Shown here: piece by piece, positions 1 to 3,347 of the stretch
Layout of the letters: every line of letters begins with the position of its first letter
Position numbering within the stretch: the first letter of the stretch is position 1
From: Blepharisma stoltei ATCC 30299
Taxonomy: Eukaryota > Protista > Ciliophora
DNA length: 64,000 nucleotides
Direction of reading: 5' to 3'
Assembly (NCBI GenBank): GCA_965603825.1
Contig: CBFDEM010000021.1
Coordinates: forward strand, 434,001 to 498,000
Program-made: the position numbers and the translations under genes
Notes under the pieces: generated by a model
Told to the model about the DNA's origin: nothing
What the model saw: only the letters and a program-made list of their open reading frames with translations
Databases searched by the model: none

Positions 1-551
1 GAAGGGCTCGCACAGCTCCAAATCTAAGCAAAGCTTTAAACGAGCTGAGAACCTTCCAGAGAACTACCAAGCTGAAAGAAGCTATAAGAGTTCACTTGTC
101 AAGCCAAATTATTTCTCAAGAAGATGCCCAAGAATTAAAGCAGTCTTTTCATGCTCTTGACAAAAATGGCGATGGAAAAATAACTAAAGAAGAGCTGAGC
201 GAAATCTATAAAATGTCACTTGGACAAGACGAAGCCGTTAAAGAAGCAGAAAGAATCATGGATGAAATAGATAGAGATAGGAATGGGTATATAGATTATT
301 CAGAATTCTTACAAATATGTCTTCAAGAAAATCGACACTTAAGTAAGGAAAATCTTATTCAATCGTTTAAAGTTTTTGATGCGGATAGTGATGGAAAGAT
401 CTCTGCTGAAGAGCTGAAGAATGTCCTCGAAACCGATGAATTGGCAGCTGACCATGTGTGGAGTGATCTAATAAAGGAAGCAGATACAAACGGAGATGGG
501 GTTATTGACCTTAAGGAGTTTATCTCATTAATGAGCAAAAAACTCAGATAA
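1..551 (+). CDS. Calcium-dependent protein kinase, C-terminal part (junction plus 4 EF-hands); 5' truncated by the window
   Basis: Frame open from position 3: junction LNELRTFQRTTKLKEAI, then four EF-hands (DKNGDGKIT, DRDRNGYID, DADSDGKIS, DTNGDGVID); TAA 549-551. Confidence 0.85.
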   Translation, partial: RARTAPNLSKALNELRTFQRTTKLKEAIRVHLSSQIISQEDAQELKQSFHALDKNGDGKITKEELSEIYKMSLGQDEAVKEAERIMDEIDRDRNGYIDYSEFLQICLQENRHLSKENLIQSFKVFDADSDGKISAEELKNVLETDELAADHVWSDLIKEADTNGDGVIDLKEFISLMSKKLR

Positions 552-811: not shown

Positions 812-2578
812 ATGGAGAAGCCAAGTGAAAATGATTGTAGTCAAGCTGAAGAAGATGGAGAGGATCTGCATAGCTTAGTTGTAAGTCATACAGACAACAG
901 GAATGAAGTTGTGGAAGTCTCGCCAAAAGGACGCTTTTTTAGGGTATAATCTATTTAGTTCAATGACGAACTCGGCTCTGGAGCTTTTAAAGTGGTTTAT
1001 CGAGGTCTAGATAATGACAATGGGTGTGAAGTTGCCTGAAATACCATCAGCTTAAAAAATCTCCCTGAAAGCGACCGAGTTCATATTGCCGAAGAAGTCA
1101 AGCTGAATCGAAGGTTAAATCATCCGAACATAGTCCACTTTATCGCTGCCTGGACAAATCCAAACAAAGAAGAACTTGTCTTAATAACTGAATTGATCAC
1201 TGGAGGCTCTCTGAAGCAGTACCTCAAAAAAATCCGCCACCCAAGACTTAAAGTTATCAAGCATTGATGCAAGGGAATTTTGCAAGGCCTGCAATACCTT
1301 CATTCTCAGAAAATAATTCATCGAGATCTGAAGTGTGACAACATCTTTATTATGTCGAACACTGGGGATGTAAAAATTGGCGATTTTGGTCTATCGACAA
1401 TTATGAGGAATCAGCTGCAGACTTCAGTTCTAGGAACACCAGAATATATGGCTCCAGAAATCTACGAAGGAAGCTATGATACCAAAGTAGACGTCTTCTC
1501 GTTTGGCATGTGCGTGCTGGAAATGTGCACCTTATCGCCTCCTTATAGAGAGTGCCAGTCACAAGCGGCAATATACAAAAAGGTTCTGAACCGGCTACTC
1601 CCTGACTCAATACAGACAATCCAAAATGAAGAAGTTAGGAACTTTATTTGTTTATGCTTAGAATTAGTAGAGACTAGGCCAACAGTAGATGAACTTCTGA
1701 AGCATGAGTTCTTGGTAATGGACGAAAAAGACCCCAACAACCACCAGCCTGTTCCTTTAATCAGCTTAAGTGATGTGAGTCCAAATTCTTTGTCTATGGT
1801 TTCGTCTCCCAAATCAGCGGAAAACGCTCAAATAGAGAGCTCTTTAATTATAAAAGATAATCTTGGGATCCTCAGGCAAGTCAGCTTCACTTTTGATTTT
1901 GCCTCTGACACTCCTGAAAAAGTGGCAGAAGAAATGGTGCAGGAACTTGATTTAGATCCTGCTCTCGTGATCCCAATAGCTAATGAAATAGAAATGCTCG
2001 TTTTCTCTAGCAAGTCCTACAAGCAGATAAGTGTTACTAGCGACCCTCGCACAGAAGATTTAATTGATATAGCGCCAGTGCCAGAGCAAAACCCAGAAAT
2101 GCAAATAAAAGTCCCCACGAACTTCTTCAGCGACCATTGTGCCTATTCATCAAAAACTCTTAACCGCTCCAATTCTACAATAAGTGAGTCAAAGATGGTC
2201 GAGCTGAATATTGAAGATCTTGTGATTAGCGAAGAACCAGGCTTGGAATATTATAAGCGAGACCCCTCTCAAGAGAATGAGAATGGAGAAGACGAGTTCA
2301 GTGAGGCTGACATTGTTTCACTGAGACGAGGTTCGCCTCAAAATAACAGAAAAGTTGTAAAACAGCTGCAGAGGGCGTTGGGAGAAGTCCTCAAGACACA
2401 TGTGAAGGTGGATGGGTTTTTTGGGAAAAAAGTTGAATCGTTGATTAAGGAGTTCCAAGAAGCTCATGGAATCGCACCTGATGGCTTGATCTCATCAGAT
2501 TTATGGAGCTGCTTGATGAGCGAGTTCACGAGGTGCAAAGAGGGGTCTCTTGGGGATATTATTATTCCAACAGAATAA
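812..2578 (+). CDS. WNK: WNK-family Ser/Thr kinase with CCT-like domain and C-terminal peptidoglycan-binding-like domain (~583 aa)
   Basis: ATG 812; intron 944-958; GSGAFKVVY (Lys in G-loop), EVAWN (TGA 1037), KHWC (TGA 1265), HRDLKCDNIF, GTPEYMAPE; VSFTFDFASDTPEKVAEEMV CCT-like motif. Confidence 0.92.
944..958 (+). other. 15-nt spliceosomal intron
   Basis: GTATAATCTATTTAG; removes in-frame TAA and joins GRFFR/FNDELG. Confidence 0.92.
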
Positions 2579-2690: not shown

Positions 2691-3347
2691 CTAAATGACC
2701 AGGATAAACCAGCCTAGAAATAGGTAGAAAAGAATCACTGGATACTCTGCTAAAACTTTTCTGCTCTCTGGCACAAGTTGGGTCATAAAACCAATTGATG
2801 ACAGTGTAGACCATGCAAATCCTGCTAAAACAATCGGAATTTTGATATAAGGCACAAATCCCAAAATGATTACAAGTAATGATGCCACATTCATCGGGAA
2901 AATGCAATACCCAAGCAAGCATACACTTTGGAAGAATGATACATTCCCTCCAAGAAGCTGGGCGTTGATAGTTACAATTGCAGCACCAACCCAAACAACA
3001 ACAAATACTATCCCGAACACCAAACTTGCAGTGTCTTGTTCAGAATTTCCTGATGAACTTGATATTGACAAAGTAAGTGCCAAAAATAAGCAAAGAAGTA
3101 GAGGTCCCCATAAATCCCAGTCTCGAAGCTGTTTGGCTTTTTCCTGCTCAGCAGATCTAGGGATCAGCACATATTTCAGCTTAAATGCAATTCTCTTTAA
3201 ATCGCGCAACTAAATATTTCTTACAATTGTTTCAGATACTGGCTCTTCAAGTGTATTTTCTGCTTCTGGTTGAGCTCCACCCATATGGCCAAGCTGATCA
3301 CTTCTAGGACCTTGTTGAAGAGTGATGTTACCACTAAGTCCAGCCAT
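2691..3347 (-). CDS. Yip1-domain Golgi membrane protein (YIPF6-like)
   Basis: NTLEEPVSETI/LRDL joined by intron 3210-3224; RDWDLWGPL, VCLLGYCIFP, YPVILFY motifs. Confidence 0.92.
3210..3224 (-). other. 15-nt intron
   Basis: GTAAGAAATATTTAG; restores the conserved Yip1 motif. Confidence 0.92.

Follow-up and report, generated by a model that had tools for sequence, protein, structure and literature searches.

The window analysed here is a stretch of 64,000 nucleotides (nt) from the ciliate Blepharisma stoltei ATCC 30299 (contig CBFDEM010000021.1, positions 434,001 to 498,000 of the forward strand). Close to its beginning lies a gene on the + strand that starts with an ATG at position 812 and encodes a product of 583 residues, ending with a TAA stop codon at 2576-2578 that is directly followed by TAG. 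It is near certain that this product is a WNK-family kinase made up of a kinase domain, a CCT-like domain, a disordered linker some 90 residues long and a C-terminal PG_binding_1 domain (PF01471; peptidoglycan-binding domain, PGBD) of bacterial or phage type. The gene is organised as follows, with the basis of each assignment in brackets:

805 to 2615, + strand: mRNA-shaped transcript contig with a 5' untranslated region of about 7 nt and a 3' untranslated region of about 37 nt
812 to 943, + strand: exon 1, the ATG and an acidic N-terminal region, 44 codons, with GRFFR as the last motif (sequence, alignment)
944 to 958, + strand: 15-nt intron gtataatctatttag of the heterotrich type (sequence; spliced out in the transcript contigs of four runs)
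959 to 2575, + strand: exon 2 (sequence)
959 to 1714, + strand: WNK kinase domain (Pfam Pkinase match, alignment with Arabidopsis WNK8, AtWNK8)
1829 to 2026, + strand: CCT-like or PF2-like domain of the OSR1_C type (PF12202 profile, predicted fold)
2027 to 2299, + strand: disordered linker (~90 residues) with much E, S, N, D and P, which evolves faster than the rest of the protein (predicted local distance difference test score, pLDDT; composition)
2321 to 2551, + strand: PG_binding_1 domain, in which a short strand at the N-terminus precedes three helices, the last one extended (Pfam core at 2354-2509)
2552 to 2578, + strand: short C-terminal tail and the TAA (sequence)

In three runs of one 2022 study (X1-X3) the gene is covered by transcript contigs in a single piece, which starts at 805, 837 or 883 and reaches 2615, some 37 nt past the stop codon, and which omits exactly the 15 nt of the intron. 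A 2015 run from a related strain gave the same spliced single-piece pattern with about 5% differences, and the product of an MMETSP transcript is 97% identical to the window protein. The convergent neighbouring gene (from 2658) is represented by a separate transcript contig. Since a contig without the intron is derived from RNA, the kinase, the CCT-like domain and the PGBD lie on one spliced mRNA, and the full protein is expressed from it. The product of exon 1 aligns with the N-termini of a Stentor protein (P0011) and of plant WNK8. In six public models (P0006, P0011, P0013, P0020, P0024 and P0026) five extra residues, such as VIFTK, VIPIK or VNSKQ, are found between GRFxR and FN(D/E)ELG. Five residues are what an unspliced 15-nt intron would add, so these Stentor- and Climacostomum-type models probably retain the intron.

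The reading frame contains two TGA codons, at 1037-1039 (EVAW) and 1265-1267 (HWCKG), both at tryptophan positions that are conserved across WNKs. Another TGA is found at the conserved tryptophan of the PGBD (L014, about 3030-3032) in the paralogous gene on contig C5 of the B. stoltei genome that was searched, a macronuclear assembly of 41.46 Mb in 64 contigs. TGA is therefore read as tryptophan here. The family, fold and database searches used stop-free pieces, mainly window positions 1280-2575 and 2300-2575; the joined exons served for the hydropathy and motif scans only, and translations with TGA as tryptophan for the alignments and trees only.

The kinase has a lysine in its glycine loop (GSGAFKVVY) and the beta-3 lysine is replaced (EVAWN), and in the alignment both motifs match Arabidopsis WNK8 and Citrus WNK8 column for column. 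HRDLKCDN, GDFGLS and SVLGTPEYMAPE, with the activation-loop serine, are also present in the open frame. The C-terminal piece scored 121 bits against Pkinase, a family that the N-terminal pieces match too. The kinase search set nine WNKs of the genome (at least 153 bits) apart from every other kinase (at most 93 bits). Moreover, the nearest named relatives of the window protein are WNKs, and plant WNK1-11 come next in the match lists after the ciliate relatives. The CCT-like domain scored 19.9 bits against PF12202 (OSR1_C) in the protein piece, below the cut-off of 22.4, although the genome search gave 22.9 bits and the paralogs reach up to 25.6. AlphaFold2 modelled it as a two-hairpin sheet plus helices with a pLDDT of 87-97 (residues 184-249 of the construct).

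With canonical WNKs (Arabidopsis WNK8 and animal WNK1-4) the protein thus shares the displaced catalytic lysine, HRDLKCDN, the activation-loop serine and a CCT-like domain placed after the kinase. It differs from them in being short (583 residues) and without a long coiled-coil region, and none of the plant WNKs among the matches carries the PG_binding_1 domain that forms its C-terminus. All nine OSR1_C/CCT-like matches of the genome fall within the nine WNK genes, and a genome-wide search detected no further CCT-bearing kinase of the SPAK/OSR1 type. The motif scan found RFx[V/I] in none of the Blepharisma WNKs, nor in those of Stentor or Climacostomum. Given these two results the canonical docking system from WNK to SPAK/OSR1 seems to be absent from this genome.

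The PGBD was recognised by profile, by fold and by its nearest structural relatives. The translation of window positions 2321-2515 begins with LRRGSPQ and ends with DLWSCL, and its frame is that of kinase exon 2 (2321 lies 454 codons after 959). The match to PF01471, which spans profile positions 4-56 of 57 and has a curated cut-off of 23 bits, scored 34.7 bits (E 2.1e-8) in the 432-residue piece 1280-2575, 37.8 bits (E 2.2e-9) in the 108-residue tail and 38.8 bits in the six-frame genome search. The initial annotation had proposed a PG_binding_1 domain at these positions, in frame with the kinase and CCT-like domains and without a signal peptide or transmembrane segment, and had named structure prediction with Foldseek as a check. 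The scores above the cut-off bear out the domain, and the single open frame and spliced mRNA its linkage to the kinase. The other two points also held, as described below. Among NCBIfam families the best partial matches are wall enzymes that bear the domain, e.g. peptidoglycan hydrolases and SleB.

Predicted with AlphaFold2 from an alignment of 33 sequences, the domain is a three-helix bundle (helices at residues 17-30, 43-55 and 66-84) with a core pLDDT of about 90, and in the longer construct (window 1280-2575) its pLDDT is 94-98. The top 27 Foldseek matches in the PDB are all PG_binding_1 domains from bacteria or phages; 22 of the 27 have probabilities of 0.9-1.0, the first 18 of them 1.00. 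The good matches have template-modelling (TM) scores of 0.5-0.73 and root-mean-square deviations of 1.2-4.6 Å, with E-values of only about 1e-2, as expected for a domain as small as this one (70 residues). They include SleC (9h68), gp144 of phage phiKZ (3bkh), 5tv7, SleB (6tci), CtpB (4c2c), a DD-peptidase (1lbu), EpsAB (4g54) and L,D-transpeptidases. When a profile of the ciliate family was compared with all PDB sequences, gp144 came first (E 2.3e-10), followed by endolysins, amidases, CtpB and SleB/SleC, and none of the 27 PDB sequence matches was a pro-metalloproteinase, even at E<=10. As the best matches are bacterial or phage proteins and no pro-metalloproteinase is among them, the domain is of the bacterial or phage type and not of the animal prodomain type. 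The matrix metalloproteinase (MMP) prodomain type was rejected on this ground and also on the lack of a cysteine-switch motif common to the family and of a protease domain.

The Pfam family, the three-helix fold and the consensus motif are shared by the ciliate domain with phiKZ gp144, also named KZ144 (3bkh), SleB/SleC, 1lbu and the L,D-transpeptidases. However, gp144 and the other wall enzymes carry the domain on secreted or periplasmic proteins that cleave the wall, whereas in the ciliate it is attached to a predicted cytosolic kinase without export signal. The protein has no hydrophobic segment (the maximum Kyte-Doolittle mean over 19 residues is 1.24) and its N-terminus is acidic. As it has neither a signal peptide nor a membrane segment, it is predicted from the sequence to be cytosolic, and the reading as a secreted or membrane protein was rejected. 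A wall enzyme domain is also lacking, so that the usual context of PG_binding_1, a secreted or periplasmic wall protein, is not that of the Blepharisma gene. This unusual context weakens any inference of function from context but does not affect membership of the fold. The longer AlphaFold2 model consists of the kinase C-lobe, the CCT-like domain, a disordered stretch (residues ~246-333, pLDDT 32-44) and the PGBD. The PGBD therefore folds independently and is held to the rest of the protein by a flexible tether some 90 residues long.

The architecture is not restricted to the window. PF01471 has exactly five matches in the genome, each of them at the C-terminus of a WNK gene, namely the window gene (contig C21) and its paralogs on C60, C5, C56 and C51, whose domains scored 40.7-50.3 bits. 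The domain is thus present in five of the nine WNK paralogs; the remaining four (C18, C2, C57 and C36) end just past the CCT-like domain. The open frames of the paralog loci are contained exactly in the NCBI entries 'WNK4_8 [Blepharisma stoltei]' (P0003) and 'unnamed protein product' (P0043). Outside this genome, two word-based searches returned 37 clusters (90% identity) annotated with Pkinase and PF01471. Those that are named all belong to the Heterotrichea: Stentor coeruleus (SteCoe_25049), Climacostomum virens (MMETSP1397), Fabrea salina (MMETSP1345, at least three clusters) and Blepharisma. The gene of P0036 adjoins an ATG8 gene that clusters with Fabrea. Past the clusters that bear the PGBD, the match lists go on with plant WNKs without it.

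A profile built from the PGBD alignment gave 19,376 matches, and almost all of the 150 listed carry 4-16 tandem PGBD repeats; as the summed scores of such repeats swamp proteins with a single domain, that search is silent on the kinase fusion. A word search limited to the PGBD region returned two close relatives only, and searches of the ESM Atlas returned only generic PGBD clusters or generic kinase clusters.

Three longer proteins (P0287, P0289 and P0320) also have the domain, with 30.7-43.9 bits for PF01471 and, in P0287 and P0289, a weak OSR1_C match. The contig that encodes P0320 (L023:8001-10451, ENA ERZ28593858 scaffold_1187) has a GC content of 0.50 and the gene a third-position GC content (GC3) of 0.59; where Blepharisma has its 15-nt intron, this gene carries one of 43 nt. 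These three proteins represent a eukaryotic lineage with a GC content of ~50% that is distinct from the heterotrichs sampled. Its members have a long K/E-rich tail past the PGBD.

The initial annotation knew of no WNK with a PGBD. That statement does not stand against the 37 database clusters and the five copies in the genome, and the wider search that it suggested led to Stentor, Climacostomum, Fabrea and Blepharisma itself. The architecture is in fact already catalogued through the automatic PF01471 tags in public databases. Nevertheless, literature searches on WNK, the peptidoglycan-binding domain, Blepharisma and ciliates found no description of it, and a preprint on the Stentor kinome lists 10 WNKs and does not mention the PGBD. 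What is new is a WNK subfamily with an accessory domain that has not been reported for WNKs in the literature searched.

For the history of the fusion, trees were computed from the kinase and CCT regions without the PGBD, and plant WNKs served as the root. The proteins bearing the PGBD fall into three well-supported paralog clades: clade A with the window gene, C60, C5, Stentor and Fabrea, clade B of the Climacostomum type, and clade C with C56, C51, Fabrea and others. Copies without the domain are nested among the bearers, C18/C2 being sister to the PGBD-bearing P0027 (support 100) and P0042/P0046 falling within the clade of P0028/P0029. The lineage with GC-50% is sister to all heterotrich-type WNKs (97 in the Shimodaira-Hasegawa-like approximate likelihood ratio test, SH-aLRT), and P0287, P0289 and P0017 carry the PGBD according to Pfam or the family profile. 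The topology suggests that the most likely course was one capture from a bacterial or phage gene before the WNK paralogs diversified, followed by several losses. In a tree of the PGBD only, where the outgroup was an unfair sample of 40 domains from multi-repeat proteins, all WNK PGBDs lie on one side of a branch that has support 0. This domain tree, of the kind proposed at the outset, is compatible with a single origin but gives it no support.

Two relatives show decay of the domain. P0285 (453 residues) has lost the first half of the PGBD and matches the family profile with 14.6 bits, and P0034 (509 residues) is a frameshifted version of the P0024 type which ends within it. Between the paralogs synonymous divergence (dS) is saturated, and thus nonsynonymous divergence (dN) alone was compared. 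For C60/C5 dN was 0.045 in the kinase, 0.156 in the PGBD and 0.216 in the linker before it; the corresponding values were 0.022, 0.083 and 0.11 for C56/C51, and 0.15, 0.479 and 1.17 for C21/C60. The PGBD is constrained, less than the kinase and more than the linkers. Taken with the tree, this makes it most likely that purifying selection has preserved the domain in most copies, while others have lost it.

As to function, we tentatively favour, with somewhat less than even confidence, the view that the PGBD was converted to a module for self-association or partner binding. The domain would then act as a flexibly tethered 'sticker' at the end of the disordered linker, used without peptidoglycan, though our confidence in this detail is low. 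By bringing WNK molecules together or to a partner it could control trans-autophosphorylation of the activation loop, in the role that C-terminal coiled coils and disordered regions have in animal WNKs. In animal WNKs the C-termini serve for clustering, and the ciliate layout, in which a disordered linker leads to a folded domain at the end and some clades add a charged helical extension, agrees with that use. Helix 3 is extended and in clade C and the GC-50% lineage it is followed by a charged K/E-rich tail. The structure predictions behind this view were of single chains.

A role away from the wall is also supported by the lack of a signal peptide or membrane segment, and by family searches in which neither a PTR2/SLC15 transporter nor a PGRP/Amidase_2 protein was found in the genome. 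Moreover, several paralogs have retained the domain in parallel, as would be expected of a central regulatory element, and it was lost repeatedly while the kinase was retained. The C-terminal domain of CtpB (4c2c), which reportedly serves for dimerisation according to the papers of the depositors, matches well (E 2.9e-7, TM 0.68-0.73). CtpB and the MMP prodomains, whose fold serves autoinhibition, use the PG_binding_1 fold without peptidoglycan, as is proposed here for the ciliate domain. The pro-MMPs differ in having a cysteine switch and a protease domain, whereas the ciliate family has neither a conserved cysteine motif nor a protease domain.

The self-association or partner-binding module must be weighed against a cytosolic sensor of wall fragments. 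According to this explanation muropeptides released by food-vacuole lysozymes or by intracellular bacteria enter the cytosol and bind the PGBD, and the WNK is activated, clustered or relocated, so that the digestion of bacteria is coupled to ion and volume signalling. We consider this possible but rather unlikely. Several observations speak for it and weigh against a module that has given up the wall. Blepharisma is a bacterivore, and its genome has seven GH25 lysozyme genes, which would make muropeptides. The WNK C-termini are the only use of PG_binding_1 in the genome, and the domain is of the bacterial or phage type, with the gp144 endolysin as top PDB sequence match and no pro-MMP at E<=10. 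Furthermore, almost every consensus position of the bacterial family is kept across the 33 sequences (DG-x-FG-KK-T/V-E...FQ...G...DG...W..L). The nearest solved relative, the KZ144 domain of phiKZ, is cited as a high-affinity peptidoglycan binder (Briers 2009, as listed among the references of PMC5674055).

On the other hand, the protein, to judge from its sequence, cannot enter the vacuole lumen, and the PTR2/SLC15-type transporter was, as said, not found in the genome. The invariant positions of the alignment belong mostly to the structural core, including an i/i+4 Glu-Lys pair on helix 2. The loop motif, which Briers et al. are said to have defined in 2007 as D-G-hydrophobic-hydrophobic-G-K/N-x-T, reads DGxFGKKT in most family members but DGFFGKKV in the window protein, with valine for threonine, and C60 and C5 have cysteine; in this clade the threonine is thus valine or cysteine in the Blepharisma and Stentor copies. 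In addition, it is not obvious why a single ligand should require five paralogs in parallel. The initial annotation had put the wall sensor first and a repurposed interaction module second; on this evidence the latter is at least as likely.

The combination of a kinase with a wall-binding domain is a known principle, represented by the bacterial PASTA kinases (PknB/PrkC) and the plant LysM receptor kinases. These have an extracellular sensor of another fold and a membrane segment, whereas the Blepharisma protein has no membrane segment and belongs to another kinase family, so that the likeness is an analogy only. Animals sense peptidoglycan in the cytosol with NOD1/NOD2 and, in Drosophila, with PGRP-LE. 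The proposed logic of a cytosolic wall-fragment sensor is shared with them, but the folds (leucine-rich repeat and amidase-like) are unrelated. It is doubtful, although conceivable, that the heterotrich WNK family consists of direct cytosolic receptors for peptidoglycan fragments, which would bind muropeptides that leak out of food vacuoles or intracellular bacteria and thereby switch WNK signals governing ions, volume or vacuoles. Such an innate sensing of bacteria by a protist kinase would have arisen independently of the NOD, PGRP, LysM and PASTA systems.

Binding of another glycan, such as N-acetylglucosamine (GlcNAc) polymers of the cyst wall, or of a peptide, which would target the kinase to a compartment instead of serving self-association or the sensing of bacteria, appears improbable to us. 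The fold occurs in many contexts as a small general-purpose binding module and the tethered layout suits targeting, yet the sequence names no candidate ligand. Still less probable is a functionless remnant of an old fusion that is drifting to loss. The several independent losses, the half domain of P0285 and the frameshift of P0034 would fit such a remnant. However, the domain is above the Pfam cut-off in 37 clusters from at least four genera and in three old paralog clades, it evolves more slowly than the flanking linkers and it is predicted to fold with a pLDDT of 94-98. That the gene is a chimera, a bacterial contamination or two genes read as one has a negligible probability and was rejected, since the whole of it is found within one spliced transcript contig in three runs and in a related strain, the frame follows the ciliate code with TGA as tryptophan even in the PGBD of C5, and the architecture is common to four paralogs and many orthologs.

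Research on WNKs treats them as sensors of chloride, osmotic state and crowding, and their accessory regions decide clustering and contacts. In these giant bacteria-eating ciliates such an accessory region has been replaced or supplemented by a domain of bacterial or phage wall enzymes which has long been kept. Should the domain bind wall fragments, it would make the protein a novel type of protist kinase that senses bacteria from within the cytosol, for which Stentor would be amenable as RNA interference works there. Should it not, the family would be a natural example of a wall-binding fold turned into a eukaryotic signalling module, beside the metalloproteinase prodomain. On either reading the WNK family with a PGBD, which comprises 37 clusters and has clear domain boundaries, is well delimited.

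The gene is flanked by two others. Upstream, window positions 1-551 (+ strand) hold the end of a gene whose last 151 residues form four EF-hands (EF-hand_1 109 bits, EF-hand_7 106 bits), with a TAA at 549-551. They may represent the calmodulin-like end of some larger protein, e.g. a calcium-dependent kinase. Downstream, a convergent gene at 2691-3347 (- strand) encodes a Yip1-domain membrane protein (PF04893, 71.9 bits). It consists of two open frames split by a 15-nt intron gtaagaaatatttag of the same type (- strand, window 3210-3224), and its stop codon is about 110 nt from that of the WNK gene. Of the seven GH25 lysozyme-like genes elsewhere in the genome, four form a tandem cluster on C12 that spans less than 10 kb (C12:734266-743984) and two another on C43 (C43:200640-202254). 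The genome also has four genes with LysM domains.

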